DNA of 33,048 bases from Ascoidea asiatica JCM 7603 (taxonomy: Eukaryota > Fungi > Ascomycota): NCBI GenBank assembly GCA_001600695.1, contig BCKQ01000040.1:1-33048 (forward strand), read 5' to 3'. The translations under genes and the position numbers were made by a program. Under the pieces are notes generated by a model, which was given only the letters and a program-made list of their open reading frames with translations, had not been told where the DNA came from and made no database searches. Positions 1 to 33,048 of the stretch are shown piece by piece. Within the stretch, counting starts at the first letter, position 1, and every line of letters begins with the position of its first letter.

Positions 1-42
1 TTCAAATTCAAATTCAAATTCAAATTCAAATTCAAATTCAAA
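1..42 (+). repeat. (TTCAAA)7 coding microsatellite, Ser-Asn repeat in the LTE1 frame
   Basis: Read directly; a related tract lies at ~475-503. Confidence 0.9.
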
Positions 43-3000
43 CTTAAATTTTAAAAATTTAAATATCTTAGATACTAAATTTAATGAAAATATTTTAAAT
101 TCTTCAATAATTTTACCTGATAATTCAATAAATTCAATTAATTCAATTCAAAATAATAATTCTCCAATTATATCTCAAAATAATATAATTAATTCAAATA
201 TTATAGATCCTCATTCATATGATATTTCATTATCTTCTAATTCCAATTCAAATAATCATTCCAATTCACATTCTAATTCACATTCAAATTCACATTCAAA
301 TTCACATTCAAATAATAATTCTAATAATCATTCTAATAATCATTCATACACTTTTTCTTCAATTTCAAATCTGAATTCATATCCATATTCTGAACATTTT
401 GGTAGTAGTTTTAGAAGTAGTATGGATAAAATCTTTGAACAAAATTATTTAATTGATGAATCTTATATTTCTCATTCAAATTCAAATTCAAATTCAAATT
501 CAATTCCAACTGCTGAATTTAATTCTCAATCCATTATTAATTCAGATTCAACTTCAAGTAAATCTGAAAGACCTTCAATTTCAATTTCAAATTCAATTAA
601 TTATTATCCTTCAATTCCATCTATTAAATCTCCAAAACAAAATTCAATGCCTGCATTTTGGTTAAGTAATTCTTTAAATAATAATTTAAATAAACAAGCT
701 TTAAAAAAAAATAATTCAAATAATAATTCAAATAATAATGAATCTGAAAATAATTTAAATAATTTAAATAATTTAAAAATAAAATCAAGAAAAAATATTG
801 ATAATAATAAATTTGAATATCGTTTTCCAAGAAATAATGTTTCAACTTCAATTCCAACTCCTGATGATTTGATTTCCGTTGATTTAATATCTGAATCAAA
901 TGATTCTTTAATTTCAAAAGAAAATCCTTTGGAAACTTTAGATAAAATAATTTTTGAAAATAAAGAAAAATTTTTAAATTATCAAAAAAATAGACCTTCT
1001 CCTATAATAACAAATAATCATTCTAGAATTTCTTCATTACCTCATTCTCTTCCTCAATCACCATCTTTTATTCATTCTCCTTCATCAAGTCAAAATAATA
1101 CAATCCAAAGCTCAAAATTAAAATCATCTCATATGACTGATAATAATTTAATTTATTCAAATAATCATTTATTAAATAATGAATTATTGTCAAATGATTT
1201 TCAAAAGTCAAATCCTCTTTCACCATCTAAACTTTTGAATCCAAACGTTAATATTGGTCGCTTTATTAATGTTTTTGCAAATCCTACTACTCCCATGAAT
1301 ATAAACTCTTCTTTTCAACTGAAAGGTATTAAATATTTATCTTCACCACAAATTTCAAAAATAAATACTGAAAATTTAATACGAAGTAATACTGTAAAAC
1401 CAATAGAAAGGGAAGAAGAGAAAGTTTTACTTACTGATATTGTTCCACCTACTCCTAAAAGAAGATTAAATTTAAGCTTAGTAACTTTTGATGAAGATGA
1501 GTTAAGCATGATTGAAAAAAAAGATACTAATAATACTGTAATTGTGGAACCCAATCCTGAAGAAAAAATAAATGAAAAGAAAAAAAAATCAATGGAAAGT
1601 AACAATTATTCCAAAAACTCAAAAGTTATACCTTCTACTTCAAAGATTAAGATATCAAGTTCCACCATTGTTTCAAACTCTGCTATTTCTTATAGCAATT
1701 CAACTGAAGGAACCAGTATAAAATCAAACTCAAGAAATAAAAATGGTCTTTTTTTAAAAGCAGTTAAAAATAATTCTAAAATAACAAAAAATTCAATTAA
1801 ATCACCTCGAACTCCTTTATCACCACTAGTTGAAAAATCAAGAAATGTCAAAGTCTTATTCAATCAATGGAAACACAGCTTCGTCGGGAAAGAAAAAAAT
1901 GAAGTAAAGCAGGATGAAAATTTAAATAACTTAGTAGAAAATTTAATTAGTATCAATAGGGCAAGTACAAATGGATTACTTGCTAATGACTTACCAGTAA
2001 GTATTATTGAATCAGTGTTGAGTTTGGAAGAAAGTCAAAAATTTCAAAAAGAAATGATGCGTGCTTCTCAAAAATCTACTATAGACCGTATGGATCCTCC
2101 AACTGATATTAAAATAGACGTTTTATCTGCTAGAGTTATCGATGAGCTTGAATTTGTTATTAAACTTCGTCAAAAAATTGAAAATAAAACTGCTTTTCTT
2201 ACCCAAAAGTCAAATGGAAATACGTTGAATCATCTTGTTCCTATATCAAATGAACATGGTGTCAATCAATTGAACCCAGAGATTCCATTTTCGTCTAATC
2301 TTAATACTGTAAATGATAGAAGTACAATTATTGATAATGCTCACAATATAAGTATGTTAAACTCACAAATACCGGACAAGTTCAATATATCTCTTGGTAC
2401 TATTGGACACTCTCTAAAAAATAGTATCTCTGAAAATATTGATGATTTAGATGTGTTTAATTTCACTGGATCTCAACAAGAATTGTTAAATCTAGAAAAT
2501 AGTCAAGAAGAAAAATGTAAAGATATGCAAAATCAGAGCGCTATTAAATCAAATTTTTCAACTGAGGGTATTCAAGAGCCTAATCAAAAATACGTACATT
2601 TTAATAATAAAAATGATATGCTTGAAACACCTGATACTTGCAACCTCTTGAAAAAAAACTATCCAGGAAAAGGTCTTCAAAATAATTACGTACAATCGGA
2701 AAGTATACCTTTAAATAACGAAGAAGAAAGATTTACTGGAAATTTGAAAGAAATTGATAGATGCTCCAGGATAAGTTATATTTCGAATAAATCATACTCA
2801 AGTTATTCAGACTCTTCTGATAATGGCCTGCTTAAAGCTTTTGAGAGTGATTTGCAATCCGATGTATCTGAAGTACATGGATTGAAAAAAATGCCTGCCT
2901 TTAATGATTTTCATGGAGCTTTAGTTGATCCTGAAAAGGAAAATATGTTTACCAATTTCAACTATTCTACACTATCAACTAGCTCAGTATCATTGGGTGA

Positions 3001-5233
3001 AATCCCTTTACCTGCCCAAACTGGCAAAAAATTGGCCTATCATGAAGCAGAAGATCTTCAAATGAATTCCCTGATTAAAAATATAGGTTCTCATGACTTG
3101 AAATTTTCAATAAATTCATTAAATTTCACTAAACTGGACAGAGCAAAAAGTTATGAAGCTCATAACTTTAGTATTTGTTCCCCTCTAGATGATATACCTC
3201 ATTCAAAATTCCAGTCCCCTAATCAAAATTCAGTCTCGACTCAACAAAACTCTCAATTTTCAAATGATGGCCGATTTCAAGAGAGCTTTTCTTCTATTAC
3301 TTCTAAATCTTATATTTCTTATAACTCTGACCTTTCTATAAGCTCCTCTAAAACTGATATTATGATAAACTCCAAAGATCTTTTGAAAAAGCGTCGGGCC
3401 TTTCCAGATCTCAAGTTGGGGGTAGAAATTGATAAAGCTCCAGAATCTCCAATATATTTGCATAGAAGATCTAATACTCCAACAACAAGTAACAGTGATA
3501 CAATCAAAGGTGATAATTTTGAGAATAATAAAAATAATAGCCGATTTAAAAGTCCTTATTATTGTAGTGATGTAGCCGATAGAATTGATTCTAAAAGCTT
3601 CGATGAGAAAACAACAAGTTTAATATCTGAATCTTCTTCTATTTTTTCATCTGGAACAAAGCCTCTTTTAATTACTTTGAAACAAAATTTAACTGAAGAA
3701 GAAGAAAAAGAATTTAAGAATGATATTAATAAGTCTCGAGAGAATATTCTCAAAATGAAGAGATCCAAAGAAATGCTTGTTGCTCAAATGAGCCACAGAG
3801 ATCTGTCCTCGATAAAATCGTATCTAAGACATAAAAAGTCTTTTTCAGCAGATTCAATTAGTGTTTATGAGGTTGAAGGTTCGGAGACAAGAGTTCTTTC
3901 TTCAGTTAGTGATACTTTCTTACCGGCTTTTGTTGGTAATAATAGAGACATGGTTAGAAACTTGAAGGATATACCAGACGAAGATATAAGTGGTGATCCA
4001 GTAAGTGCTGCATTATGGAAATTAGAAGGAAAGCCTGAACCTAAGTTTAATAATATTGATACTTCTGATTCATTAAATTCAGAGGATGATCTCAAGAAGA
4101 AAAGTGTTGATTCTATACATGTTGATACTGATACTATTAGTAGAAATGTTGCAGAACTCAGTATTGCTGATTCTGCTGACATTCAAATGGATCCACCTAT
4201 TGGAGTGGGTCTGCTTGAAGGAAATATATTCGTCTCAATACCGAAGGTAGTTCAACAACTCAATAGTTTTGTTTGCACTTCCAAACTATGCAAAAATGTG
4301 AGCTCCAATTCTATTATTCAGGAAGAATTTTTAGATATTGAAAAGCAGTTAGAAGAGCATTTAATTACTGAGGGAGTTTTATCTATCAGCGAAGTTCTAG
4401 CAACTAAAAGACATATTTCATTTATTCTTAATTATGATTCATTTACATTGGCTAAGCAGTTTACTTTAATTGAAAGAGATACTTTATCTGAAGTGGATTG
4501 GAAGGAACTTATTGATATGGATTGGTCTCCAGAATTAAAACCAATCACCAGTTGGATTCAACTTTTAGTAAAAAAAGAAGTGAAAGGAATTGATCTTGTT
4601 ATATCTAGATTTAATTTAACAGTTAATTGGATTGTATCGGAAATTCTTCTAACAAGTGAGGAAATGTATCGAAAAGATACTATTGCAAGATTTATTCATA
4701 TTGCAAATCATTGCCATAAACTTCAAAACTATTCAACTCTTATGCAAATTATTCTTGCACTAACCACCCCAAGAATTAAACGATTATATTCTACTTGGAA
4801 TAAAATGGACGCTTCAGATATTTTTATGTTAAAAAATTTAGAAATATTTTTCAATTCAGAAGGAAACTTTTATAAATTAAGAAAAGATTTTGATCGTATA
4901 ATTCCTTCAAAGGGCTGTGTTCCTTTTTTTGGTTTATATCTTTCAGATTTAACATTTAATAGTAGTAAACCTATTTTAATATCCACTGCGTCAATTAACA
5001 AATTAAATTGTGCAAATGAAACTCCAAATTTAGACATCAATGATGATACCACATTAGTGAATATTGAGAGATTTTCTTCAGCATCTCAGATTGTACGTAA
5101 TTTCATTCAATGCATTCAATGGTCTAAGTTGTACGATATTGAATCTGTGCCTCAAGTATTATCAAAATGTTTGTATATAAAATCATTAACTGAAGAAGAA
5201 ATGGAATTATGCTTGAATAAAATTGCTGGATAA
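2..5233 (+). CDS. LTE1: Lte1-like RasGEF (CDC25 domain) mitotic-exit regulator, 5'-partial
   Basis: C-terminal RasGEF domain (HISFILNYDSFTLAKQFTLIERD...VDWKELI...RFNLTVNWIVSEI...GCVPFFGLYLSDL) plus a DPVSAALWKLEG block typical of Lte1. The frame is open from base 2 to the ATG at 422 (SNSNS...FGSSFRSS-M) and no N-terminal REM domain is seen, so the true start is probably outside the window. Confidence 0.85.
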   Translation, partial: SNSNSNSNSNSNSNLNFKNLNILDTKFNENILNSSIILPDNSINSINSIQNNNSPIISQNNIINSNIIDPHSYDISLSSNSNSNNHSNSHSNSHSNSHSNSHSNNNSNNHSNNHSYTFSSISNLNSYPYSEHFGSSFRSSMDKIFEQNYLIDESYISHSNSNSNSNSIPTAEFNSQSIINSDSTSSKSERPSISISNSINYYPSIPSIKSPKQNSMPAFWLSNSLNNNLNKQALKKNNSNNNSNNNESENNLNNLNNLKIKSRKNIDNNKFEYRFPRNNVSTSIPTPDDLISVDLISESNDSLISKENPLETLDKIIFENKEKFLNYQKNRPSPIITNNHSRISSLPHSLPQSPSFIHSPSSSQNNTIQSSKLKSSHMTDNNLIYSNNHLLNNELLSNDFQKSNPLSPSKLLNPNVNIGRFINVFANPTTPMNINSSFQLKGIKYLSSPQISKINTENLIRSNTVKPIEREEEKVLLTDIVPPTPKRRLNLSLVTFDEDELSMIEKKDTNNTVIVEPNPEEKINEKKKKSMESNNYSKNSKVIPSTSKIKISSSTIVSNSAISYSNSTEGTSIKSNSRNKNGLFLKAVKNNSKITKNSIKSPRTPLSPLVEKSRNVKVLFNQWKHSFVGKEKNEVKQDENLNNLVENLISINRASTNGLLANDLPVSIIESVLSLEESQKFQKEMMRASQKSTIDRMDPPTDIKIDVLSARVIDELEFVIKLRQKIENKTAFLTQKSNGNTLNHLVPISNEHGVNQLNPEIPFSSNLNTVNDRSTIIDNAHNISMLNSQIPDKFNISLGTIGHSLKNSISENIDDLDVFNFTGSQQELLNLENSQEEKCKDMQNQSAIKSNFSTEGIQEPNQKYVHFNNKNDMLETPDTCNLLKKNYPGKGLQNNYVQSESIPLNNEEERFTGNLKEIDRCSRISYISNKSYSSYSDSSDNGLLKAFESDLQSDVSEVHGLKKMPAFNDFHGALVDPEKENMFTNFNYSTLSTSSVSLGEIPLPAQTGKKLAYHEAEDLQMNSLIKNIGSHDLKFSINSLNFTKLDRAKSYEAHNFSICSPLDDIPHSKFQSPNQNSVSTQQNSQFSNDGRFQESFSSITSKSYISYNSDLSISSSKTDIMINSKDLLKKRRAFPDLKLGVEIDKAPESPIYLHRRSNTPTTSNSDTIKGDNFENNKNNSRFKSPYYCSDVADRIDSKSFDEKTTSLISESSSIFSSGTKPLLITLKQNLTEEEEKEFKNDINKSRENILKMKRSKEMLVAQMSHRDLSSIKSYLRHKKSFSADSISVYEVEGSETRVLSSVSDTFLPAFVGNNRDMVRNLKDIPDEDISGDPVSAALWKLEGKPEPKFNNIDTSDSLNSEDDLKKKSVDSIHVDTDTISRNVAELSIADSADIQMDPPIGVGLLEGNIFVSIPKVVQQLNSFVCTSKLCKNVSSNSIIQEEFLDIEKQLEEHLITEGVLSISEVLATKRHISFILNYDSFTLAKQFTLIERDTLSEVDWKELIDMDWSPELKPITSWIQLLVKKEVKGIDLVISRFNLTVNWIVSEILLTSEEMYRKDTIARFIHIANHCHKLQNYSTLMQIILALTTPRIKRLYSTWNKMDASDIFMLKNLEIFFNSEGNFYKLRKDFDRIIPSKGCVPFFGLYLSDLTFNSSKPILISTASINKLNCANETPNLDINDDTTLVNIERFSSASQIVRNFIQCIQWSKLYDIESVPQVLSKCLYIKSLTEEEMELCLNKIAG

Positions 5234-5617
5234 ATCAAAATGTGTTACTGTCATTCTTATTTAACTTAATACTTTTTTACTCTGTTTCAATATTGTCATT
5301 ATCATACACTTATTTTTTCTTGCATTTTTAGTTTTTCTTTTTTTTTTCGTTATTTTTTAGCTTTTTTTCTAGATTCTAGTTTACTTCTTTTGAATATTTT
5401 GTTTTTTTTTGTTAAATTCACCTTATCGTTGTGATTAATTCGATTTTAATTTTTAATTAGGTAGCATGTCTTTTTATTTATTTGTTTTTATTATTTATTT
5501 ATTTCTTTGTTATAAAATTTTATTTTTTTCAAACTTGATGAAGCTCTTTTGTTTACAAAAATTCGAACTAAATTCTAAATTATTTAATAAATGTGATATA
5601 TAATCAAATATTTTTTT

Positions 5618-6247
5618 CTATTTAATTATATTTCTGTTTCCACCGAAAACAACCTTTTCAGTATTTTGATTTGCACCACCCATATAACCGTATTCAATGG
5701 TACTCCATTGTGAAACATTCTTTTGAAGATGTGAAGGCTTTCTTGGAACTCGTGGAGCAGGTTTTCTGTCTTTTGAAGCTAGATTTGGTCCAATAACTTT
5801 AATAGCTGGGTTTATTTTATTAGCATATCGACTTAAACTAATTATTGCCGTATATACTTGAGAAGAATCTTGATTTTCAAATAAATCAACGGTAGAAAAT
5901 AACTCATCTTCTGGAACACCAATTTTCTTAGCATGAGCTAAAAATGTTGATATATTTTCCATTTTTATAAAAGGAAATTTTGGATTATGATTGAATTTTA
6001 TGTTTTTATTTTCTATTGCTTCTATCAATTTACAAAGAACAGTGCCATCATTTAAAATATCTAATAGATCCCCTTGATCTTTTAAATTAGATTCATTGAT
6101 ACAAGAAAATATCCAATTTTTGATTTCTGTAATTTTACCAATATCATATTTGGCATCTCTTTTTAGCTTTAAATCTTCATCAAGGGTAGTTACATCTGGT
6201 TTAACTCCATATACAGGACTATACGATAAAGTTTTATTTGGAAGCAT
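5618..6247 (-). CDS. SCP1: Calponin/transgelin homologue (actin-bundling)
   Basis: DVTTLDEDL N-terminus, CH domain (DGTVLCKL...PFIKMENISTFL...GVPEDELFSTVDLFE) and C-terminal calponin repeat (WSTIEYGYMGGANQ). Confidence 0.93.
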   Translation of the reverse strand: MLPNKTLSYSPVYGVKPDVTTLDEDLKLKRDAKYDIGKITEIKNWIFSCINESNLKDQGDLLDILNDGTVLCKLIEAIENKNIKFNHNPKFPFIKMENISTFLAHAKKIGVPEDELFSTVDLFENQDSSQVYTAIISLSRYANKINPAIKVIGPNLASKDRKPAPRVPRKPSHLQKNVSQWSTIEYGYMGGANQNTEKVVFGGNRNIIK

Positions 6248-6458
6248 GGTAAAAGTATTGTATTTTCAAAATCTAGTTGATTTAAGCAAATTAGTTGATT
6301 ATAATAATGGGTATAACTATTGAGTAATTCATGTTTATATCCAAGTGGTAAAACAATCTTTTTTGAATGAGATAGTTGCTTATTTTTATAGCTGGTTCTA
6401 AGCTGGCATTGGTGAAGCTGGTGCTTATATATTTTAAAGTTAACTTTACACACTTTAC

Positions 6459-6513
6459 CATGACTGATGACTAGAGTTTCCGTATTACCCTGCAATTTGA
6501 GGGCAGTTCGTTG
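6459..6513 (+). promoter_or_regulatory. Shared upstream element with TTACCCT-N8-AGGGCAG dyad (Reb1/Tbf1-like sites)
   Basis: 6485-6513 matches 24633-24661 at 25/29, preceded in both by catgRctgatgaMtagaR. Lies ~210-270 bp upstream of SCP1. Confidence 0.45.
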
Positions 6514-7016
6514 GGAAAAGAAACTGTATTTATCTTTTGATATTGGGAAAAAGGCAAAATGAGTTTTTCTTTCAACTTTTTATTTGATCATTGAAAATTC
6601 TTATATTATAGTTATGTTAAAATAAGGCATTAATTATTGAAGACTTGCAAAAGGAGTTCGATGTATTGAACCAGTTCATATTCAGATAACAACAAGTATT
6701 TTTTAAAAAGGAAAAGTAATACAATAAAAAGAGCGTTATTTCTATAATGAAATCAAAATACCTAATCAGAAAATAACAATATCAAATCCTCAAATTAGCA
6801 AACTCAGATTTTATGATAGTAAATTTTTAAATAAAACCTTAGGGGATAATTTATCTTTCTAAGCTTAAAAGGGAAACATAGACTATCCAATAAGTTGTTT
6901 ATTTTTCGATAAATCAGAAGAAAAACATAACAATAAACGTAAGAGTAAATATTCTATTTCTTTTCTTGAATTAAAATTATTCATTAGGAATTTATAATCA
7001 TAAAACATATTTAAAA

Positions 7017-8081
7017 ATGGGGTTGTTTGCAAGAGTTATGGAAGATTATAGAACTGATGTTTATCAACGTTGGGTTACTCATAATTGGAAAACAGAGCTT
7101 TATTTGGTTGGTACTTTATTAGTTTTTGTTGTTTGCCATATTATTGGATACAAATTAAATGAAAGTTATGTTAATAAAATTATTAAAGCAATTAAACCAT
7201 ATTTAGATGAAAATTTTTATAAATTTGGTTGTTCAGATACTGAATTATATATTAGAGATAATGATCAATTGTATACAACATATGCAAGTGGTAGAGTTAA
7301 TATTAAGAACATATTGATTAAAATTGTTTTAAAAGCAAGACAAAATTTTATTTTATATTTCTTTCAAGATGTTTTTTCATTTTTCATGCAAAGTTTAAAA
7401 GTTGAAGAGGATGTAATTGAAATTGTTGGAAATTTTAATGCTAATATCAAAGTTAATAATTTTATCTTTTCAATTGTTAATAAAGAAAATATGAAAGAAA
7501 ATAGAAATTCAAATTACTTTTTATCCTTAACAAAAACTCTTGATTCTTCAAATTTGCCAAATCAATTTGTTTTTATGTCCGAATCTTCTGAAATTAATGA
7601 TTTAATACTTGAAAAATCTGATATTAGTGATTTATTAAAGAATGTTGGAGATGTTTTACAATTTTTTGCAATTACAGATCAAGATTCCGTTCATCCAATA
7701 AATGTTGAAGATTGTACACCACTTCCTCGTTTTGTTATGAAACTAAATCTAAAAACTTCTAAAAAAGATTTATCACAAATTTTAGATTCTTTCAAATTAT
7801 TGTTTGCTATTATTGATTTTGTTTCAAATGATAAAAAATTTCAACCAAGACCAGAAGCTTTAAAAAAAATTAATAATGTTAGAAAACAAGAAGTTGATAA
7901 AATTATTAAAAGAATTGAACTTGAAAAAAAGGAATTATTAGAAGAAAAAAAAATTGAGGAACAGAAGAAAATTAGAGATGATATGAAAAGCAAAAGTCCT
8001 AGTGAACTAGAAAAATTAGAAAAAAAACAACAAGCAAAAAAAGAAAGAAGAATGAGAAATAAACAAAAATTTAGAATGTAA
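7017..8081 (+). CDS. CCDC47 / DUF1682 family ER membrane protein (YNR021W-like)
   Basis: N-terminal TM segment, YTTYASGR, RQN, NYFLSLTKT..S..LP..FVFMSES.E, TDQ motifs and a basic coiled-coil C-terminus. Confidence 0.85.
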   Translation: MGLFARVMEDYRTDVYQRWVTHNWKTELYLVGTLLVFVVCHIIGYKLNESYVNKIIKAIKPYLDENFYKFGCSDTELYIRDNDQLYTTYASGRVNIKNILIKIVLKARQNFILYFFQDVFSFFMQSLKVEEDVIEIVGNFNANIKVNNFIFSIVNKENMKENRNSNYFLSLTKTLDSSNLPNQFVFMSESSEINDLILEKSDISDLLKNVGDVLQFFAITDQDSVHPINVEDCTPLPRFVMKLNLKTSKKDLSQILDSFKLLFAIIDFVSNDKKFQPRPEALKKINNVRKQEVDKIIKRIELEKKELLEEKKIEEQKKIRDDMKSKSPSELEKLEKKQQAKKERRMRNKQKFRM

Positions 8082-8309
8082 ATCTACTATATAAAAATGT
8101 TAATATTTCTTTTTTTTCTTAATCAACTTTATATCTAACATATTTTGAGTGGTATGTTCAAAACGACCACCCATTTACCGGAAATGACTGGCTCGTAATG
8201 TTTGTTGAAACACCGAGGTCTGTTCTAAAAGAAATTTATATTTGAATACTCAAACAATTAGAAAAACTTTCTTAATAAACTAAATAAATAAGAATATATA
8301 AAAAAGAAA

Positions 8310-9939
8310 TACTAACAGATTTGTGCTAGTTTATTATAAGACTCTTCAATATTAAATTCCTCAGACTGCTGGTCCAAGTCATTTGACTGTGGCGGTAAAG
8401 GCGAAGGATTCTAGAGAGACCAGCACTTGTAAAAGTAGATAGAACAACAATTGGAGAAGGAATGATATTAATTTTCTTTTTATCATCAGAAAAAGATTGA
8501 TTAAGAATTCCAAAAACAAATCCTGGAGTATTTGGCTTGACGTTAAAGTGAGAAAAAGGTTTATCTAAATCATCATCCAAAGAATTATTACTTTTTGTAA
8601 AGAGACTTTAATCCTCAGTTGGAGAAACAATCACAGTAGAAGTTCACATTTTAGAAGGACCCATATCAGAAGAACTTGTTGCAGCAGAGATAGTTTTAGA
8701 TTATTGTAACTATTTTTTTCATTGATCATGTTATCATTTTTAATGCTATTATCAGTATTAAAAAATTTTATATTAAATTATATGAATAGTTATTATGAAA
8801 TAAAGGATGATAATCTTGATGAATTTTATAATAATTTATTTCAAGAAGAACTTTATTCACCAATAATTTTAAATAATAAATTAAAAGAATTGTTCAAAGA
8901 TTATATTTTTTTAATAAATAATTTTAAATAATGTTTTTATTACTACTAATGCTATATATATACATATTATTACAATTATTATTATTAGAGATTGAATTTT
9001 TGTTATCTGAATTCCTAAAACAGGGAACATTGATCTCAGTTTCATCTAGATTCATTGTAGTATAATTAACAAATGGCTCTAATTCTGAGCCATTATTAGA
9101 CAAATCATTTCTGTAATTAATTATGTTATGATTACCACTAGCTAGAGTAGAATGTTTACCTACGCTAAAAGCAAGAGAATACTCAATCGAAACTTGAAAA
9201 GTGGTATCAAATAAAGAGGATTAATTTAAGCTATTCTGTTGTCTTAATATTGAAGGCAAGAAATATTTGTTTGATAAGGAATTATAGTAATTATAATTGC
9301 TATTATTATCATTAAGTTGTTCAGAAATTGGGGATTGTGATTTACTATAGGCTTGAGAAGATGAAGGATTATCTTTCTTAGAATCTATATTTGAAAAATT
9401 AGTTTAAGAATTTGGAAATGAATAAGCTGATAAGTTGTGATTGAAACCTTTTTTTCAAGATTTTTAATAAATTTATTATCACATGAAAAATTTGAAATAT
9501 AATTTGAAGAAGATCTGTTAGCAGAATTTAAATATGACAATGAATTAGAAAACAAATTATTTAAACCTTTAAATTTCATTCCTATAGGTTGATGTCTTAC
9601 CGTATGTTAACCAATGTGAAAATTTGACAAGGTAAATTGACAATGTAGATGGAGATTTTTCCAAATTAAATACATTTCAGTATGGGAGTTAAGTAAATAA
9701 TTTTTACCTAAATCATCAATTTCAGTAACAGCTTTAGTTTTTTCATATACCTGATTATCATCTTTTGGAATTGAACCCAATTCTTTGCCCAGCTTTAATA
9801 TCCAACCATCTGAATTATTACCGTCATCATCTGAGGAGTTTCACGAAGCAGTAATATCTGCTAAATTCCAAACAAAATTATTATATTTCATAAATTTTTT
9901 AATATGGTCGATTTCATCATCATAAATTTCGGGGAACAT
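8310..9939 (-). pseudogene. Decayed coding relic(s) of an unidentified Ser/Asn-rich protein
   Basis: Minus-strand coding-like stretches broken by stops and frameshifts: ATG 9939 MFPEIYDDEIDHIKKF...AS*NSSDDDG...; ...IG*HTVRHQPIG into ORF 9385-9579; SSLFDTTFQVSIEYS...; ...MGPSKM*TSTVIVSPTED*SLF into ORF 8326-8580. No family recognised. Confidence 0.4.
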
Positions 9940-10630
9940 TTTCGAATTTCACTGGAAATTTATAACAAATTAATTATAGCCTAAAAAGAAAAAATACAAA
10001 AGGAAGTAATAATAAAGAAAGCAAGAGAAGAAATAACCATAAATAAGTAATTGCGAAGATTAAGAATATAATTCAGACATAAAGCTTAATCCAGCATAAT
10101 GATCAACTTATTTAATAGAATCAAAAGCATTGAATTGGTCAGTAAACTAGGTGATATTGTCAAGAAAAGATGAGGCCCATGCTTCACAGCCAAATAAATT
10201 TTAAAAAACACTAAAATACATTCAAAGAGACAGTATGAACGGAAATTGAAACCATTGGCGGACGTTTGATTGTATGGAAGCAGATCGGTTCATTAAACGG
10301 GTAGATCACAAATTTGCTATTTGATGTATTTTGTGATTTGTTTTTCCGTTTAAATCAGTTACTATTAAGCAATGCTCTTACAGCTTTGAAGGTACCTTTA
10401 ATACTTTGGTTTTCAAATATATGTTTCAGTATTTTCTGCTGAAATTCTATCTCCGCAAAATCAATTCAATCTACATCAACAACTAAACTTTTTAAAGAAA
10501 AATGTTTTAAACCAAAACAATAAAGTTGCCTCCCTTACTGAAACATTTATCAATATTCATATCATTAATAAATTAAAATTTAAATGCAAATTCAATTAAA
10601 ATTTCCATAACTGTGAAAACACCTTATAAA

Positions 10631-12802
10631 ATGCTAAATGACCTTGTTGAATTGGCTGCGGCCGATATAGCAACCTATACAAATGATCGATTATCAAATT
10701 CCAACTGGAGTGAATTTAAATTTTTAGATGCTCTTAGTACTGATATTGTATGTCCAGATTCACGACCATTTATATCTAACCTTAGAAAGATAATCATTAA
10801 GAACAAAAACAATATTTTTCCTGACATAAAAGAAAATGATACTTCAATTGATCTATTCTTTGATTGTCTCCTTGAGGCGATTAATAATAAAATCAGATTC
10901 TTGCAAATTTTCCCTTTCAATCCACTTTATTTATCTTTTAAATTTTCAAAGTATTCTTTATCAAAATTCAATACATCCAATAATACAAGCGATTCCCATT
11001 CCAGTATCACAGTTAGAAAAAATAAAGCATTGTTAGATTATTATTGTGTTGTGCCAGCTTCATCTTCTATTCAATTTACTGAAGATGACTTTTTTTCTAC
11101 ATGGGATGATATTCAGCAAATTTTAGAAACAGATAGATCAATAATTACGTTACCTCCATATGATTATACCAGAATTACTCCAGAGTCCAAAGAAAGTACA
11201 TTAGAAAGTGAATTTGATCTATGCATACTTAAACAGGCAGTAGAATTAGTGACGTTTCTAAAGCATAAAAAAACAGGTCAACGCTTTAGAATTAAGAATT
11301 TAACAAACAAGGCTAATCCAAACGTATATCCAGACAAGTGTTTAGTTCTGGATTCCCTTAATGAAGAAGATTTTCATAAATGCTGTGTTTTGGTGATTGA
11401 ATTTAAAAGACCCAATATCTTAACAGATATTTTAAAAGTAATGAAAAATGGTATAAGATGCTTAAATGGAGATAATTTGAAAGATTGCAGAAAATTTTTT
11501 ACCCAGTCAATTCATCAAGCCATAAGCCAGGGTACCAAATATGGTGTTGTTGGTGATTTTAATTCTTTTATGTTTTATGAAATATTAGATTAAGGCAAAG
11601 TAAGGTTTGTTGAGGGAAAGCTGCTAACAAAGGAAATTAGAATTCGCTACTACATTGCCAATAGATTCGACGAAAAAAACCTTTTTACAGTCTTTCTATT
11701 TCGTTGTGTTGATCATAAGCTTGAAGAGATTGAGTTGTTTAAAAAGCAGCATGGTGGTTTATATCCAAAACATGAAGATATGATCAACAGTTTAAAAAAG
11801 ATAACAAAATTAGAGCTGCCAACTGAGCATAAATTAAACAGCGTGAGTAAAGAACTCAATAATGTTGAATCGTTCTTCAAAAATTCCAATCACATTACCA
11901 ACGCATGCAAAAGCTCAGAAAACTTTCTAATTGAAGAAGTAAAACAAGTGTCGAAAAACATCATTGATTCTAAAATATTCCTTGCCAACAATGATTTTGT
12001 ACAATATATGACTTACAAAGATTGGGCAGAATGGGAAGATAAGTCATATACAGAAACAAATAAATTTTTATACAAAAATTTGAATGGTGATGATAGTTAT
12101 TACTTAGAGGTTTTACAAGGGGCCGACTGGTTTCATAATTTGAGTATTGTTATTAGAATTAGCTGGACTAATTGGGAAGAAGGCAAGTATTTATTGAATA
12201 ATTTTAATGTTTCTAAAAAGTTGCAGAAGGATATGGAGAAAAACAAGAGTTGTAGTATAATTGTGAAAATATTTGATTACTTTCGGTGTATAAATAAAGT
12301 GGATGATTCAATACTAGACCCTGTGGATGTGTTCAAATCACTATTGCAAAATCTATTGATCAAAGAGTTGGAGGCGTATGGGAAAATTGAAATGTATCGT
12401 AGGAAAAACAAAACAGAAGAAAGAATCACTCCTATAATGTATGGTTCTGGATTATTTTCCAGCAAAGCTATAAAAGATAACAAGTCTGATAATATAACTA
12501 AAGCAAGTGTTAAAGAATTAAATGGATCTTTATTAGGACCTTTTATCATTTTAGAAGATTTAGGTGATTTAGAACTTACAAATAGTGAATTTGAATTGTG
12601 TAAGAGAAAGTTAGAAGATACATTAATTTCACGTTATGGAATAGTTCATAATGATTTAGAAATGAGAAATGTGAGAAAAAAGAAAGTAGATGGCCAAAAC
12701 TCAAACTCAAAATCAAATTTTATTTTTTATGTTTATGATTTTGGGTTTTTTAAAGAAAGCCAAAGAAAAAAACGTAAACATTCTTCTGCTCAATTGCAAT
12801 GA
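10631..12802 (+). pseudogene. PD-(D/E)xK nuclease-like + atypical kinase gene (Spok / CR-effector-like architecture) interrupted by one in-frame TAA; pseudogene or split/read-through gene
   Basis: ORFs 10613-11593 and 11735-12802 share a frame and the 47 codons between them are open. Nuclease motifs: SKE helix, YPD (PD 11330-11335), VIEFKRP (from 11393), QSIHQA, TKYGVVGDFNSF. Kinase motifs: IVKIFD, KELEAY, PIMYGSG, GPFIILEDLG, GIVHNDLEMRNV, VYDFG. First ATG is at 10631. Confidence 0.72.
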
Positions 12803-13275
12803 TTTTTACTTTCACTACGATGAGCAGATGTTCAGGGGTTCAATATTATGTTGCTAATATATAACAGAAATGGATTATTTATTTATTAATATTATTGTTA
12901 TTTGTCGGGAAAAGTGTAATAAACTTCAAAAATAATATTTATAAACGGTAATAATTTACTTTTGGTTTTAGTCTTTAACTTTTTTACTATTCATTTTGCA
13001 GTACATATTTTTTTAATCTTTTTCTTAAATTATTATCAATACTTTTTTTTGGATAATGCAATTTAATATCTACATCTTTGTCTGTAAATCGTAAAATAGA
13101 AAATAACTTTAGTGAATTTTTCAGTAAGTATAGAGATTTCTAATAATTTCAAAATTGTATAAAAATCATGAATCTCGGAAAGAAAAGTAAAAAATCAATA
13201 AAAAAGTACATTTGAAAGAATATTGTTCATTAGGAAATACTATTGATTATTCTACACAACTTTCATATTTTGATC

Positions 13276-13293
13276 ATATATATATATATATAT
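13276..13293. repeat. (AT)n microsatellite
   Basis: atatatatatatatatat read directly. Confidence 0.7.
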
Positions 13294-13456
13294 TGCTCAT
13301 TACGGTTCTAGAGTTAAACAATTTTGAATGTTTAGGATTGTGTTAGTTTTTAAGAAGAATAATAGTTGCAAAATATCATTACCTTATTTTTAATCTAACG
13401 TGCGAGCATTCATTCTGCTATCACCATGGTCCAGCTAAAGTCATTTTATACGGTTC

Positions 13457-13918
13457 CTAACTGATATTCAGAGATTTAACAAAATCCCATGCATGGTTTT
13501 TACCAATTGCATAATCTAATCATTTTAGAATTTATGTTTGGATAAAGGATTATTTGCCATAAGCACATTTCTCATTACACATACCTTTTAGTCCTTCTTC
13601 ACTTCTAAATTTACGTTATCAAGAACCTTTAACTACACCAAAAGGTAGTGGGACCACAAAGTATGTTACAAAATCTTTTGCGACAACATTACCTAATTTT
13701 GAATTATTTGCAATGTACTTACAGATTTTCCAATTATTTCGGAAAACAGAAGCATCTAGTTCAAATTCATTATAATTTGTGATATTTAGAGCTGTTTCAA
13801 CATTTTTGACCACCATCATTGTCGAAACTGGTGCACAAGCTTCTCCTTTAGCAATTGGCATATCTTTTGTAATATCGGTGATTAGAGTTTCCATACAATA
13901 ATGACCTTGAAGTACATT
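13457..13918 (-). pseudogene. MSC7: 3' fragment of an MSC7-like aldehyde dehydrogenase
   Basis: QGHYCMETLITDITKDMPIA...GNVVAKDFVTYFVVPLPFGVVKGS**RKFRSEEGLKGMCNEK...*SFIQT*ILK*LDYAIGKNHAWDFVKSL follows the Msc7 C-terminus as I recall it. Multiple in-frame stops, degenerate EVFGP motif (EACAP), N-terminal part absent. Confidence 0.8.
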
Positions 13919-14075
13919 GAAAATACTATTCTTTGTTGTTTATTGAAACTATCTTTATCATATTCAGGACTGATTAAAACAAACTAGTTTCTTCAGACAC
14001 AAAAAGCTCTTAATATTTGAGAGTCTGATAGCATATTAATAGTTTCATAATTATAAGAGTCTTGAAGTGATTTCT

Positions 14076-14893
14076 TTAGATAATTTTTTTTTGTATTTGA
14101 ATTTTCAATGTTTGACAACTAAATGCTAGAAAGTTTTTATAAGATATCAAATTTCCAGTTAATACATCCAAAGAATTTTCTTCATTTCTTGAATTTTCTT
14201 CATTTCTTGAATTATCTGATTTTTTAAGGAAAATTGAGAATAAAAGATTGCCTTTGTAATAATCTTGATTATTATTCATATTGTTATCATTATTTTCATT
14301 AAGTTTGTTATAATTTTCAAATTGAATAAAGTTCTGTCCTTTTTCAATTATTTCTAAAATAATTTGGATAACATTCTTGTTAAATTTGAATAATCTTATC
14401 ATAGTTATTTGATTGAAAATAAAGTAAAAAAAATGTGATTATTATTTAGTTTCTGAAGTCCATTGGAATTAGATGAAATCGTTTCAAGATTAAAAAGTTT
14501 TGAGAAATATGATGAATTTTGAGTTGGAAAATTGTTATATGGATCAGTATTTGAAATAATATTTGATAAATCATTTATGTTATTATTTAAATTCAGATTC
14601 GTTTTATTTAATTCCGAATTAAAAGATATTAAATAATTTGGGATTGATAGAATCTAATAACCATTTTAGAATAATTGGTTAAATAATTTATCAAATAAAA
14701 TAGTTCTTGAATTTGAATTTGAATTCGATTTTAAATCTGATAAATTGATTATATTTCCATTATTGAAATATTCATTATCATATTCATTGTAATTATTATG
14801 AGTATTAATATTACGAATATTATTCTTATTATTGTTTTTTAATTCAGAACAGAATTTGAAATTTGTTATCTGATTTACTTTGGATTGATTCAT
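14076..14893 (-). pseudogene. Decayed Asn-rich coding relic, unidentified
   Basis: ORF 14666-14893 continues in frame past two stops (QLF*NGY*ILSIPNYLISFNSEL..., ~80 open codons), then shifts frame into ORF 14076-14402. Contains an 18-bp tandem duplication at 14173-14213 (NSRNEE x2). Confidence 0.45.
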
Positions 14894-15356
14894 TATTGTA
14901 ATTTCAAAAGAAAATTGATTAACTAATAAAGGATCCTTTGTTTTTAATTACTACGATTGTTCAACTTTTTTTCATTATTATTATTCTTTGAATTGCAAAG
15001 GTTGATTATGATTAAGTGAATTGTGAAAGTTTATTAGTATTATTCAGCTTCTGTTAATTATTATTATATTCATATGATGATTTATGACATTTAATAAAAG
15101 TAACATCTTAAGGAAGACTAAACTTATTTCATATTTTTTAAGAGCACTTTCTATTGTACACTGTTTTAATTAAATAACTGACTCTCTTAACTGTAAACTT
15201 GTTGATTCTTATTAAAACTTATAATATCTAAAAAAAGATGTTCTTGATTTGTAAAAGAAACTTTCTAGCGATAACTTAAATCAATAAAGTGTAATAAGTT
15301 ATTATATTTGTTATATTATCTTTTAATGAAATTAAGTCATTCTCGATAATTGTAAA

Positions 15357-15437
15357 ATTGTAAAACCAGACTCCAGAAATCGTTGTATGGCAAACCATGT
15401 GATCTGCCTAGTTGAAGAGCCCAACTCCAGAAATCGA
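15357..15437 (+). repeat. Dispersed direct repeat, copy 1 (partner 24524-24602)
   Basis: 44/46 identity over 15357-15402 vs 24524-24569, weaker for ~35 bp further. Internal duplication of actccagaaatcg. Confidence 0.9.
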
Positions 15438-15654
15438 ACACAGAAGAAGATGCCTGTGGGTCGGAGAGAAAGATCTACGACTCGCTTATGTCAGTATTTC
15501 CTTATTCCTGACTCAGCAGCTTAGTGTTGGAAAATTATTTTTTTTCTTAAAGTTTTGGAGGAAGTTTGACTTTAATCTAAGCAAAAAAGTATCACTTATG
15601 TAAATAATATTTCAATTACTAAAAGAACCTAAAATACATCTAATTATTAACTAG

Positions 15655-24523: not shown

Positions 24524-24602
24524 ATTGCAAAACCAGACTCCAGAAATCGTTGTATGACAAACCATGTGACACACATAGTTAGAGCCAAACTCCAGACATT
24601 GA
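24524..24602 (+). repeat. Dispersed direct repeat, copy 2 (partner 15357-15437), in the PHA2 upstream region
   Basis: attgcaaaaccagactccagaaatcgttgtatgacaaaccatgtga matches 15357-15402 with 2 mismatches. Confidence 0.9.
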
Positions 24603-24661: not shown

Positions 24662-24967
24662 TTTAAAGTAAGCGCATGACATTTTGTTAGTACGACCCTT
24701 GTAAAACTAAAATAAATAAAAGACTGAGCAAAAAAATTTAAAAAATTTAGAGATTATTTCTCCAGAGAATCCACAAAAATCAATTACGTAATTCCGGGTA
24801 CCGGACATTTTAATTGTGTTTTTTGGGTCCGGAATGAGGCAGAAAAAACCCAGAATACATTGAGAACATAAAATATGATTCAGAAAAATGTTTATTGTTG
24901 GTAAGAAATTTTAGATATAAAGTTGATTAAGAAAAAAAAGAAATATTAACATTTTTATATAGTAGAT

Positions 24968-26032
24968 TTACATTCTAAATTTTTGTTTATTTCTCATTCT
25001 TCTTTCTTTTTTTGCTTGTTGTTTTTTTTCTAATTTTTCTAGTTCACCAGGACTTTTGCTTTTCATATCATCTCTAATTTTCTTCTGTTCCTCAATTTTT
25101 TTTTCTTCTAATAATTCCTTTTTTTCAAGTTCAATTCTTTTAATAATTTTATCAACTTCTTGTTTTCTAACATTATTAATTTTTTTTAAAGCTTCTGATC
25201 TTGGTTGAAATTTTTTATCATTTGAAACAAAATCAATAATAGCAAACAATAATTTGAAAGAATCTAAAATTTGTGATAAATCTTTTTTAGAAGTTTTTAG
25301 ATTTAGTTTCATAACAAAACGAGGAAGTGGTGTACAATCTTCAACATTTATTGGATGAACGGAATCTTGATCTGTAATTGCAAAAAATTGTAAAACATCT
25401 CCAACATTCTTTAATAAATCACTAATATCAGATTTTTCAAGTATTAAATCATTAATTTCAGAAGATTCGGACATAAAAACAAATTGATTTGGCAAATTTG
25501 AAGAATCAAGAGTTTTTGTTAAGGATAAAAAGTAATTTGAATTTCTATTTTCTTTCATATTTTCTTTATTAACAATTGAAAAGATAAAATTATTAACTTT
25601 GATATTAGCATTAAAATTTCCAACAATTTCAATTACATCCTCTTCAACTTTTAAACTTTGCATGAAAAATGAAAAAACATCTTGAAAGAAATATAAAATA
25701 AAATTTTGTCTTGCTTTTAAAACAATTTTAATCAATATGTTCTTAATATTAACTCTACCACTTGCATATGTTGTATACAATTGATCATTATCTCTAATAT
25801 ATAATTCAGTATCTGAACAACCAAATTTATAAAAATTTTCATCTAAATATGGTTTAATTGCTTTAATAATTTTATTAACATAACTTTCATTTAATTTGTA
25901 TCCAATAATATGGCAAACAACAAAAACTAATAAAGTACCAACCAAATAAAGCTCTGTTTTCCAATTATGAGTAACCCAACGTTGATAAACATCAGTTCTA
26001 TAATCTTCCATAACTCTTGCAAACAACCCCAT
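24968..26032 (-). CDS. CCDC47 / DUF1682 family protein (YNR021W-like), second copy
   Basis: Mirror of 7017-8081; RSEAL vs RPEAL and SPGEL vs SPSEL. Confidence 0.85.
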   Translation of the reverse strand: MGLFARVMEDYRTDVYQRWVTHNWKTELYLVGTLLVFVVCHIIGYKLNESYVNKIIKAIKPYLDENFYKFGCSDTELYIRDNDQLYTTYASGRVNIKNILIKIVLKARQNFILYFFQDVFSFFMQSLKVEEDVIEIVGNFNANIKVNNFIFSIVNKENMKENRNSNYFLSLTKTLDSSNLPNQFVFMSESSEINDLILEKSDISDLLKNVGDVLQFFAITDQDSVHPINVEDCTPLPRFVMKLNLKTSKKDLSQILDSFKLLFAIIDFVSNDKKFQPRSEALKKINNVRKQEVDKIIKRIELEKKELLEEKKIEEQKKIRDDMKSKSPGELEKLEKKQQAKKERRMRNKQKFRM

Positions 26033-26535
26033 TTTTAAATATGTTTTATGATTATAAATTCCTAATGAATAATTTTAATTCAAGAAAAGAAATAGAATAT
26101 TTACTCTTACGTTTATTGTTATGTTTTTCTTCTGATTTATCGAAAAATAAACAACTTATTGGATAGTCTATGTTTCCCTTTTAAGCTTAGAAAGATAAAT
26201 TATCCCCTAAGGTTTTATTTAAAAATTTACTATCATAAAATCTGAGTTTGCTAATTTGAGGATTTGATATTGTTATTTTCTGATTAGGTATTTTGATTTC
26301 ATTATAGAAATAACGCTCTTTTTATTGTATTACTTTTCCTTTTTAAAAAATACTTGTTGTTATCTGAATATGAACTGGTTCAATACATCGAACTCCTTTT
26401 GCAAGTCTTCAATAATTAATGCCTTATTTTAACATAACTATAATATAAGAATTTTCAATGATCAAATAAAAAGTTGAAAGAAAAACTCATTTTGCCTTTT
26501 TCCCAATATCAAAAGATAAATACAGTTTCTTTTCC

Positions 26536-26590
26536 CAACGAACTGCCCTCAAATTGCAGGGTAATACGGAAACTCTAGTCATCAGTCATG
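26536..26590 (-). promoter_or_regulatory. Mirror copy of the 6459-6513 element
   Basis: Part of the right arm of the inverted repeat. Confidence 0.45.
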
Positions 26591-26801
26591 GTAAAGTGTG
26601 TAAAGTTAACTTTAAAATATATAAGCACCAGCTTCACCAATGCCAGCTTAGAACCAGCTATAAAAATAAGCAACTATCTCATTCAAAAAAGATTGTTTTA
26701 CCACTTGGATATAAACATGAATTACTCAATAGTTATACCCATTATTATAATCAACTAATTTGCTTAAATCAACTAGATTTTGAAAATACAATACTTTTAC
26801 C

Positions 26802-27431
26802 ATGCTTCCAAATAAAACTTTATCGTATAGTCCTGTATATGGAGTTAAACCAGATGTAACTACCCTTGATGAAGATTTAAAGCTAAAAAGAGATGCCAAA
26901 TATGATATTGGTAAAATTACAGAAATCAAAAATTGGATATTTTCTTGTATCAATGAATCTAATTTAAAAGATCAAGGGGATCTATTAGATATTTTAAATG
27001 ATGGCACTGTTCTTTGTAAATTGATAGAAGCAATAGAAAATAAAAACATAAAATTCAATCATAATCCAAAATTTCCTTTTATAAAAATGGAAAATATATC
27101 AACATTTTTAGCTCATGCTAAGAAAATTGGTGTTCCAGAAGATGAGTTATTTTCTACCGTTGATTTATTTGAAAATCAAGATTCTTCTCAAGTATATACG
27201 GCAATAATTAGTTTAAGTCGATATGCTAATAAAATAAACCCAGCTATTAAAGTTATTGGACCAAATCTAGCTTCAAAAGACAGAAAACCTGCTCCACGAG
27301 TTCCAAGAAAGCCTTCACATCTTCAAAAGAATGTTTCACAATGGAGTACCATTGAATACGGTTATATGGGTGGTGCAAATCAAAATACTGAAAAGGTTGT
27401 TTTCGGTGGAAACAGAAATATAATTAAATAG
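26802..27431 (+). CDS. SCP1: Calponin/transgelin homologue, second copy
   Basis: Translation identical to 5618-6247. Confidence 0.93.
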   Translation: MLPNKTLSYSPVYGVKPDVTTLDEDLKLKRDAKYDIGKITEIKNWIFSCINESNLKDQGDLLDILNDGTVLCKLIEAIENKNIKFNHNPKFPFIKMENISTFLAHAKKIGVPEDELFSTVDLFENQDSSQVYTAIISLSRYANKINPAIKVIGPNLASKDRKPAPRVPRKPSHLQKNVSQWSTIEYGYMGGANQNTEKVVFGGNRNIIK

Positions 27432-27815
27432 AAAAAAATATTTGATTATATATCACATTTATTAAATAATTTAGAATTTAGTTCGAATTTTTGTAAACAA
27501 AAGAGCTTCATCAAGTTTGAAAAAAATAAAATTTTATAACAAAGAAATAAATAAATAATAAAAACAAATAAATAAAAAGACATGCTACCTAATTAAAAAT
27601 TAAAATCGAATTAATCACAACGATAAGGTGAATTTAACAAAAAAAAACAAAATATTCAAAAGAAGTAAACTAGAATCTAGAAAAAAAGCTAAAAAATAAC
27701 GAAAAAAAAAAGAAAAACTAAAAATGCAAGAAAAAATAAGTGTATGATAATGACAATATTGAAACAGAGTAAAAAAGTATTAAGTTAAATAAGAATGACA
27801 GTAACACATTTTGAT

Positions 27816-33047: not shown

Positions 33048-33048
33048 A
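33007..33048 (-). repeat. (TTTGAA)7 microsatellite, mirror of 1-42
   Basis: Read directly. Confidence 0.9.

Follow-up and report, generated by a model that had tools for sequence, protein, structure and literature searches.

The window, a 33,048-nucleotide stretch of DNA from the budding yeast Ascoidea asiatica, carries a gene, here termed gene A (Table 1), which we would put at about even chances of being a decaying copy of a small and very fast-evolving family of the Ascoidea lineage. The layout of this putative family would comprise a variable N-terminal region, a middle domain with a restriction endonuclease (REase)-like series of residues (Asp, Glu/Asp/Gln-x-Lys and a Gln-helix) and a minimal kinase domain. 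The condition of gene A, with a premature TAA just past the nuclease-like core, a shortened tail and a location in an island of repeats and gene relics, would fit a copy on its way to loss, while two candidate relatives in the same genome, genes B and C, are intact.

Table 1. Features of gene A, of its surroundings in the window and of the candidate sister genes B and C (residues past the stop are in read-through numbering)
Feature	Position	Strand	Remarks
Gene A, whole	10631..12802	+	722 sense codons in a single frame from the ATG at 10631 to the terminal TGA at 12800-12802; 1 internal TAA
N-terminal region, aa 1-179	10631..11167	+	no recognizable family
Nuclease-like motif region, aa 180-320	11168..11590	+	acidic helix, D235, E257-x-K259, Q292/Q296 helix, two strands
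D235	11333-11335	+	motif read directly
E257-x-K259	11399-11407	+	motif read directly
In-frame TAA	11591..11593	+	codon 321; interrupts gene A after codon 320
Post-stop block and linker, aa 322-521	11594..12193	+	no family matches
Minimal protein-kinase-like domain	12194..12745	+	beta3 Lys, alphaC Glu, hinge, HxD..N, DFG
beta3 Lys	12266-12268	+	kinase motif
HxD..N	12647-12670	+	kinase motif
DFG	12737-12745	+	kinase motif
Short basic tail and stop	12746..12802	+	basic run aa 712-716 at 12764-12778
Dispersed-repeat fragment	8148..8753		at least 10 copies, 78-82% identity; begins at the inner edge of the inverted repeat
Aldehyde-dehydrogenase gene relic	13619..13894	-	Pfam Aldedh 2.8e-13, profile positions 353-441 of 461; 0.8 kb downstream of gene A
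Gene B	C1:1229952-1232321		intact, 789 aa; same genome, other contig
Gene C	C11:331905-335681		intact, 1258 aa; same genome, other contig

The coding frame of gene A has the TAA as its sole internal stop, while 27-94 stops occur in the other five frames over this stretch. Given the frequency of stop triplets in the window, a run of 723 codons would contain no more than one stop with a probability of about 1e-23; hence this is a coding sequence now or was one recently, and the reading frame is real and was coding until recently. In the 20.3-Mb assembly gene A is single-copy at the DNA level, and its GC3 and codon use differ somewhat from those of the neighboring genes, as would be expected under relaxed selection or foreign origin. 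Reading of the sequence by eye found no canonical 5' splice site upstream of 11591 able to remove the TAA, and an intron spanning it was rejected for this reason. The block that follows the stop aligns with a block conserved in B and C (p about 0.02 against C and 0.15 against B), which suggests that the TAA probably falls inside a domain. In all searches the pieces before and after the stop were used separately, and scripts linked them solely through an X at the TAA, which is residue 321 of the read-through numbering. Being interrupted by this TAA, gene A as assembled is broken and can be neither an active driver nor an active toxin/antidote gene, for which the sequence-only reading had named it a candidate.

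It could be argued that the living yeast has an intact gene A, with the TAA at 11591 an error of assembly or base calling and the gene a working third member of the family. Apart from the TAA the frame runs undisturbed through 2.17 kb, no residue of the kinase or nuclease-like motifs has been lost, and stop codons seen in nanopore reads of Spok genes were not confirmed by Illumina reads (PMC12693581). Moreover, the contig is palindromic, with an inverted repeat of 8146 nt at 100% identity, and this build places the local assembly quality in doubt. Against this, long-read errors are more typically homopolymer indels than substitutions that create a stop, the tail of gene A is also shorter than those of B and C, the gene lies amid other relics, and its GC3 and codon use set it somewhat apart from its neighbors. 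We accordingly regard a sequencing or assembly error as unlikely and the decay of gene A as the better account.

The C-terminal half of gene A is supported as protein-kinase-like with its catalytic residues in place, a conclusion drawn from pattern, language-model and profile comparisons and from the comparison with B and C, all of which agree with the earlier description of an atypical kinase. The series K546, E579/E581, the hinge E642-D643, H673-x-D675...N680 and D703-F-G705 occurs in order. A pattern combining HxD..N and DFG had 36 matches genome-wide, against 0-1 in the control; gene A was among them and nearly all the others were ordinary kinases. In a language-model search with the kinase half all 10 of 10 clusters belonged to the kinase clan (score 0.96). 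A regular expression from the catalytic loop to DFG matched 44 of 200,000 shuffles, a figure that overstates significance, as does that for the nuclease-like motifs given below, because these expressions were written after gene A had been seen. A three-sequence profile of A, B and C matched 771 PDB sequences, the top 60 of which were all kinases (best GCN2, 3.3e-5), with much of this signal carried by B and C; gene A alone gave no Pfam or PDB match at E<=10. The domain is abbreviated: the protein ends 17 residues past the DFG glycine (18 past the DFG Phe), so that a complete C-lobe after DFG, with the activation segment and helices F to I, is absent and most of the normal C-lobe is missing. 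Downstream of the tail no convincing continuation was found in the other frames, and an alternative tail that frameshifting within the A-run near 12765 would give was discarded, as it bore no likeness to the tails of B and C (p about 0.8-1.0).

A protein search for paralogs of gene A in its own genome returned none even at E<=10, and B and C were located only by motif pattern. Both have the same two-domain order, the kinase motifs and the minimal C-lobe of gene A, and both are rich in Asn runs. They are clear paralogs of each other in both domains (5e-23 and 3e-12), with about 30% identity in the aligned parts. Gene A is more distant, matching C with E 0.009 and B with E 0.055 at collinear positions; hhalign of its kinase half against B and C together gave E 0.016. 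Its kinase compared with those of B and C gave Z = 5.0 and 4.3, with 0 of 2000 and 1 of 2000 shuffles, respectively, reaching the real score. Among 44 sampled kinase segments from the genome B and C ranked first and second against gene A (Z 4.9 and 4.3), while the next-best genomic kinases reached Z 3.9 and 3.75; the link could thus come partly from shared composition and general kinase likeness. By these comparisons B and C show themselves to be the closest kin of gene A within the genome. Scans of the genome with the Kdo and FTA2 families yielded only ordinary kinases and were dropped, and Bub1-like, Mps1-like and other kinases were examined as potential kin and set aside. Three-way alignment brings the motifs of A, B and C into register in both domains. 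The tails past DFG are 42-43 residues long in B and C, as against 17 in gene A, i.e. about 25 residues shorter.

The same comparison bears on the notion that gene A is two separate genes forming a toxin-antidote pair, in which the open reading frame to 11593 encodes a lone nuclease and the second a lone kinase. The TAA does lie between the two motif regions, and an in-frame ATG is found 62 codons past it (11780-11782). However, both parts share one frame that only one stop interrupts, each of B and C has them in one protein, and the post-stop block aligns with the block that follows the middle domain in these two genes. Space for a second promoter is lacking as well, and yeasts do not usually make bicistronic messages. 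A pair of genes is hence very improbable.

The middle region of gene A only looks like a DNA-cutting enzyme, by its motifs. All the motifs listed in the sequence-only reading are present in the read-through protein in the order given there, and the nuclease-like part runs from an acidic helix (about aa 185-212) through P234-D235, E257-x-K259 and the Q292/Q296 helix to two strands ending at aa 317. A low-confidence model of the region predicts a helix, three strands, helices and two strands. While the restriction-endonuclease-like motifs were thus recovered, a REase fold was not: the region had no match in sequence or profile searches of Pfam, NCBIfam, PADLOC and PDB, and neither profile, fold nor shuffle analyses lent support to a nuclease fold. 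Single-sequence AlphaFold models of both gene A pieces had a pLDDT of 38-39 and were unusable; Foldseek with the model of the N-terminal half gave meaningless matches, as expected. Comparison of the N-terminal half or middle domain with B or C was not significant by hhalign, by HMM-plus-shuffle or by local-alignment shuffles. When aligned by eye, the middle domains of A, B and C have in common a series of Asp, x-Lys and Gln-helix, with an invariant Asp in B and C 9-16 residues ahead of the x-Lys motif. In B, Gln replaces the acidic residue of this motif, and the supposed nuclease active site is therefore not conserved across the three proteins.

Relatives were sought widely. The N-terminal region had no Pfam match even at E<=10; in a language-model search the N-terminal half was nearest to unnamed Ascomycota clusters (0.93), with a SPOK2_N cluster at rank 20 (0.87), though recognition of the query was below the trust level of the tool. 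The kinase half, in an exhaustive phmmer search of 1.84 billion representative proteins, matched nothing but a spurious repeat protein. Pfam, NCBIfam and PADLOC searches with both gene A pieces and their sub-pieces, and searches of PDB sequences with both pieces, were blank, as were word searches with both pieces, whose length limits left out full-length kin. Two metagenome scans with the B/C alignments gave no match. Taken together, these sequence searches show gene A to be without detectable relatives beyond its own genome.

These results leave room for a more prosaic account, namely an ordinary lineage-specific kinase family in which the middle domain is regulatory or scaffolding, the Asp...ExK series of gene A is a chance look-alike and the gene is a redundant paralog being lost, with no function in conflict or as a toxin. 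In its favor, neither profile nor fold searches point to a nuclease, the acidic residue is replaced by Gln in B, and the PD...ExK expression was composed after the fact. The neighbors of B and C are ordinary housekeeping genes, a setting compatible with ordinary cellular genes and selfish genes alike. On the other side, the series in gene A is canonical in its order, spacing and flanking hydrophobic strands, with 75 of 200,000 shuffles matching the PD...ExK expression, and its Asp and Lys positions are common to A, B and C. Further, the kinase is oddly minimal, and such divergence, with B and C at so low an identity and A barely alignable, is unusual for housekeeping kinases; the N-terminal half, as noted, lies nearest to unnamed Ascomycota clusters and has one Spok N-domain cluster among its matches, below trust level. 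Such a family is a real possibility, if one to which we lean less than to the decaying member of a fast-evolving family with a REase-like middle domain.

The layout of an N-terminal region, nuclease-like motifs, a kinase and a basic tail mirrors that of the published Spok3 (PMC6660238), as the sequence-only reading had anticipated. In Spok3 the PD..ExK series is at 219-240 and the catalytic Asp at 667 (PMC6660238); the corresponding positions in gene A are 235-259 and 675. The two are alike in an N-terminal region with no assigned family, nuclease-like motifs and a small C-terminal kinase in the same order, in size (both about 720-735 residues, Spok1 having 734 and gene A 722 codons) and in a predicted nuclear address. 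In both cases, moreover, a genome has several divergent copies, some of which are pseudogenes carrying premature stops, the neighborhoods are repeat-rich and the distribution is patchy; pseudogenes, premature stops and nearby transposons are on record for Spok genes (PMC4022471, PMC6660238). The repeat and relic setting, the missing relatives and the premature stop of gene A all recur in published Spok genes. Spok-like identity nevertheless held for layout and not for sequence. The Cys/His cluster ahead of the Spok3 kinase, C-x3-C-x13-C-x5-H-x7-H, is needed for resistance (PMC6660238), and neither a strict nor a loosened pattern found it in A, B or C. The Gln-helix of gene A is Q-x3-Q, not Q-x3-Y as in Spok, and its host is a budding yeast, whereas Spok homologs are reported across Pezizomycotina (PMC4022471, PMC12693581). 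Gene A is likened to Spok by published layout, not by comparison with Spok sequences; this copy is broken, and killing and resistance roles would be assigned to it by analogy with Spok only.

In light of the above, it is hardly credible that gene A should act in this strain as a Spok-type meiotic driver. The Spok-like layout (PMC6660238) and three CRCAAAW cores within 330 nt upstream of the gene, against 0.36 expected per 700 nt, would suit such a role, but the gene breaks off after codon 320, lacks the cysteine cluster and has no demonstrated homology to Spok. Truncated Spok3 that retains the nuclease without the kinase is toxic, and function is abolished by stops within the nuclease domain (PMC6660238); hence a stable carrier of the gene A allele is best read as having a dead copy.

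A second point of comparison is offered by Crinkler/RHS-type effectors such as Phytophthora CRN8, for which a toxic nuclease, a regulating kinase and nuclear targets are proposed (PMC5289972, PMC12693581). The combination of REase and kinase is there described as a recurrent conflict architecture and credited to Zhang et al. 2016 (PMC12693581, PMC5289972). Compared by description, these modules resemble gene A in that a single polypeptide carries a REase-like domain and, after it, a protein kinase. Gene A, however, is not the effector of a pathogen but an intracellular gene of a yeast, and its kinase falls well short of the length of a full eukaryotic protein kinase. In addition, no header for secretion or translocation is evident in it, and Pfam showed no domain at its N terminus.

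By analogy with Spok and with the REase-plus-kinase Crinkler-type proteins, the middle domain may be a DNA-damaging nuclease, which the kinase might restrain in cis or from which it might protect the carrier, while the basic tail would send the protein to the nucleus. Under such a toxin-antidote model the TAA would be the inactivating lesion of gene A. The spore-killer idea is itself an analogy. In its boldest form, which we consider quite unlikely, the Ascoidea lineage would have its own Spok-type single-gene toxin-antidote family, with a killing nuclease and a protecting minimal kinase, in which B and C are live and A has been disarmed by a stop just past the nuclease core, and which shares with the Pezizomycotina Spok genes the architecture and no detectable sequence. 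We know of no nuclease-plus-kinase killer meiotic driver described in budding yeasts, and such a family, if real, would be the first there. Should the middle domain prove to be a kinase-restrained nuclease, this design would be extended to Saccharomycotina and would help in addressing the still open question of how a single Spok-type protein can be at once killer and protector; should it not be a nuclease, what is left, of local interest only, is a small family of fast-evolving and unusually minimal kinases, one copy of which is dying. B and C are small enough for testing in Saccharomyces cerevisiae.

The surroundings of gene A are a 7.5-kb island of repeats and gene relics (Table 1), and no tRNA or Rfam families were found in the window. 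In regard to a conserved syntenic ortholog, which the sequence-only reading had named as evidence against a selfish gene, none is present beside DBP10 in Ascoidea rubescens, the nearest sequenced relative and the one relative locus read. A tblastx comparison of the relic region with this locus likewise returned nothing. Dbp10 of A. rubescens was the best match, at 65% identity.

The gene under study (gene A), which has a nuclease-like plus kinase layout, occupies a frame whose sole internal stop is a TAA at 11591-11593, and the remaining five frames over the same 2.17 kb contain 27 to 94 stops each. At the stop-triplet frequency of the window, the chance of a frame of this length with at most one stop is about 1e-23; therefore gene A is a coding gene, at present or until recently, and both the frame and the motif series of the sequence-only reading are indeed present in it. 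Its GC3 is 0.22-0.28 versus 0.11-0.20 in six neighbouring genes, with which its codon use also correlates more poorly. It has three CTG codons (amino acids 240, 331 and 396); in a host that resembles Ascoidea in this respect, their decoding may be ambiguous. The portions before and after the stop, P1 and P2, were searched separately, and in scripts were joined solely with an X at the stop.

Features of gene A, of its contig and of the related genes B and C (window positions; residues in read-through numbering with X = 321 at the TAA; G000, the assembly; C1 and C11, contigs; L063 and L064, excerpts holding genes B and C)
Feature	Position	Strand	Remarks
Gene A	10631 (ATG) to 12800-12802 (TGA)	+	722 sense codons, single frame
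P1	10631-11590		320 aa
P2	11594-12799		402 aa
beta3 Lys	residue 546		P2
alphaC Glu	residue 579 or 581		P2
Hinge Glu-Asp	residues 642-643		P2
HxD..N	residues 673-680		P2
DFG	residues 703-705		P2
Basic run	residues 712-716		C-terminal tail of gene A
Inverted repeat	1-8146 and 24903-33048		8146 nt, contig ends; reported 100% complementary
Dispersed-repeat fragment	8148-8753		at least 10 copies on other contigs, 78-82% identity
Aldehyde-dehydrogenase relic	13619-13894	-	Pfam Aldedh positions 353-441 of 461, 2.8e-13
Short multi-copy repeat	15108-15402		just upstream of DBP10; at least 15 places, 70-83% identity
Partial copy of the preceding repeat	24524-24602		near PHA2; 85%
Gene B	G000:C1:1229952-1232321 (L063:2453-4822)		789 aa, intact; looser motif pattern
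Gene C	G000:C11:331905-335681 (L064:1406-5182)		1258 aa, intact; looser motif pattern

The more useful outcome of the analysis is the kinship of gene A with the intact genes B and C of the same genome. Protein searches recovered no paralogues of gene A in its own genome, even at E<=10; B and C were located by a looser motif pattern. Judging from their sequences, these two are clearly paralogous in both domains (kinase 5e-23, middle domain 3e-12), and they are surrounded by ordinary genes, namely MRPL10-like and adenylate kinase genes for B and TOM13 for C. Gene A aligns at collinear positions with C (E 0.009) and B (0.055), and P2 with B and C combined at E 0.016 (hhalign). Gap-tolerant alignment of its kinase yielded Z-scores of 5.0 against B and 4.3 against C, with the true score being reached by 0 of 2000 and 1 of 2000 shuffles, respectively, and of 44 genomic kinase segments the closest to it is B, followed by C. 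Three-way alignments bring into register the kinase motif blocks (Lys, Glu, hinge, catalytic loop, DFG) and, in the middle domain, those of the Asp, the x-Lys and the Gln helix. In the latter domain the similarity of gene A to the other two genes does not reach statistical significance. The acidic position of the x-Lys motif is Glu in A, Asp in C and Gln in B, and an Asp 9-16 residues upstream of this motif is common to B and C. We infer that gene A belongs with these two intact, highly divergent genes of the same design.

This comparison also bears on the stop. The block just 3' of it aligns with a block conserved in B and C (p ~0.02 versus C, 0.15 versus B), which suggests that the TAA cuts a domain rather than marking the boundary between two genes. 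In Spok3, one of the Podospora spore-killer proteins combining nuclease and kinase, loss of the kinase with retention of the nuclease results in toxicity, and a stop within the nuclease domain in loss of function (PMC6660238). Because of this behaviour the stop at codon 321 is best read as an inactivating lesion. It may also be a base-calling error, false stops in Spok genes being known from nanopore data (PMC12693581). As assembled, gene A is broken, and in this form is therefore no active meiotic driver of the kind earlier proposed.

For P2 alone no match was found in Pfam or PDB. Nevertheless, the proposal of a kinase is borne out by its ordered motifs and by three independent lines of evidence. 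First, a DNA-level pattern of HxD[L/F]...N followed after 12-22 residues by DFG hits 36 genomic sites, gene A included, where the reversed control gives 0 and 1; nearly all the other sites are canonical HRDLK-type kinases. Second, in a language-model search P2 adjoins fungal Kdo/APH/FTA2/Bud32-type kinase clusters at 0.96, with 10 of 10 in the kinase clan. Third, a profile of the kinase regions of A, B and C matched 771 PDB sequences, the top 60 all being protein kinases; the best, GCN2 (3.3e-5), aligns from the hinge to beyond DFG. The C-terminal half of gene A is thus supported as a protein kinase. The domain is minimal: the protein stops 17 residues past the DFG glycine, and B and C end 42-43 residues past DFG, so the tail of gene A is about 25 residues short, with no continuation found in other downstream frames. 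The basic run described for this tail is present.

In P1 an acidic helix is present, P234-D235 lies where one hydrophobic strand begins and E257-x-K259 where another ends, and a helix bearing Q292 and Q296 is followed by two further strands. This series, close to that reported for Spok3 (PMC6660238), looks like a canonical PD-(D/E)xK core, and the secondary structure of a low-confidence model of P1 agrees with it in order (helix, three strands, helices, strands). A motif regex, composed after viewing the sequence, matched 75 of 200,000 shuffles. Searches of Pfam, NCBIfam, PADLOC and PDB sequences with P1 gave no match, nor did a profile of the A, B and C middle domains against PDB; structure prediction, which had been suggested as a check, returned unusable models for the gene A pieces (pLDDT 38-39). 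Hence, of the REase-like nuclease claim the motif series stands, and profile, PDB and fold comparisons gave it no support. We give the middle domain about an even chance of being a true REase fold, and regard a nuclease in gene A as plausible but unproven.

Spok proteins have about 734 residues without a recognised N-domain, a PD..ExK motif at 219-240, a Cys/His cluster and a small kinase whose catalytic Asp is residue 667; they are predicted to be nuclear, are frequently pseudogenized, show 3'-end frame changes and occur patchily in Pezizomycotina in transposon neighbourhoods (PMC4022471, PMC6660238, PMC12693581). Gene A resembles them in layout and lifestyle traits but is devoid of the Cys/His cluster. 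The Spok likeness advanced by the sequence-only reading would accordingly be one of layout and lifestyle, with one defining feature failing.

Beyond this genome, two word searches with gene A pieces, blind to full-length kin, gave no match, and no true relative emerged when 1.84 billion representatives were searched exhaustively with P2 (phmmer). The Dbp10 of the window has its best protein-collection match in Ascoidea rubescens (65% identity over the full length; 1343 bits versus 1152 for the next match), which points to a budding yeast host of the Ascoidea lineage, without a close relative in databases; this weakens any argument from absent relatives. At the DBP10 locus of A. rubescens, the nearest relative with a sequenced genome (KV454481.1, 687918-710986), a 960-aa TPR gene lies 232 nt upstream of DBP10 and PHA2 directly downstream; a gene A homologue is absent and tblastn with P1 and P2 was blank. 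Thus, at the one relative locus read there is no syntenic orthologue of the kind that would argue against a selfish gene. Gene order also differs, in that the window has PIK1 between DBP10 and an inverted PHA2, which are adjacent in A. rubescens.

The window is an entire contig of a 71-contig, 20.3-Mb assembly, and its other genes encode a RasGEF, a CH-domain protein, a CCDC47 homologue, DBP10, PIK1 (with the yeast-specific Pik1 domain) and prephenate dehydratase. The first three are carried by the terminal inverted repeat, which may reflect either a genuine inverted duplication or an error of assembly; the start of contig C12 is a 910-nt copy that covers window 6952-7850 only. Gene A, single-copy at the DNA level, sits in the unique middle, within an otherwise ORF-poor 7.5-kb stretch (8147-15654). 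This stretch opens, at the inner edge of the inverted repeat, with the dispersed-repeat fragment, fuller copies of which are ~1 kb long with two small ORFs lacking Pfam matches, and it contains further multi-copy pieces. Neither a tRNA nor an Rfam family was detected at the short repeat near DBP10 or its partial copy. The aldehyde-dehydrogenase relic, likewise within this 7.5-kb stretch, has a 72%-identical DNA match on contig C42. Finally, three copies of CRCAAAW, the S. cerevisiae middle-sporulation-element core, lie at 10307-10460, within 330 nt upstream of the gene A ATG (0.36 expected per 700 nt of the window); with no full 9-mer match among them and no excess in the B and C promoters, they may serve as a weak lead.
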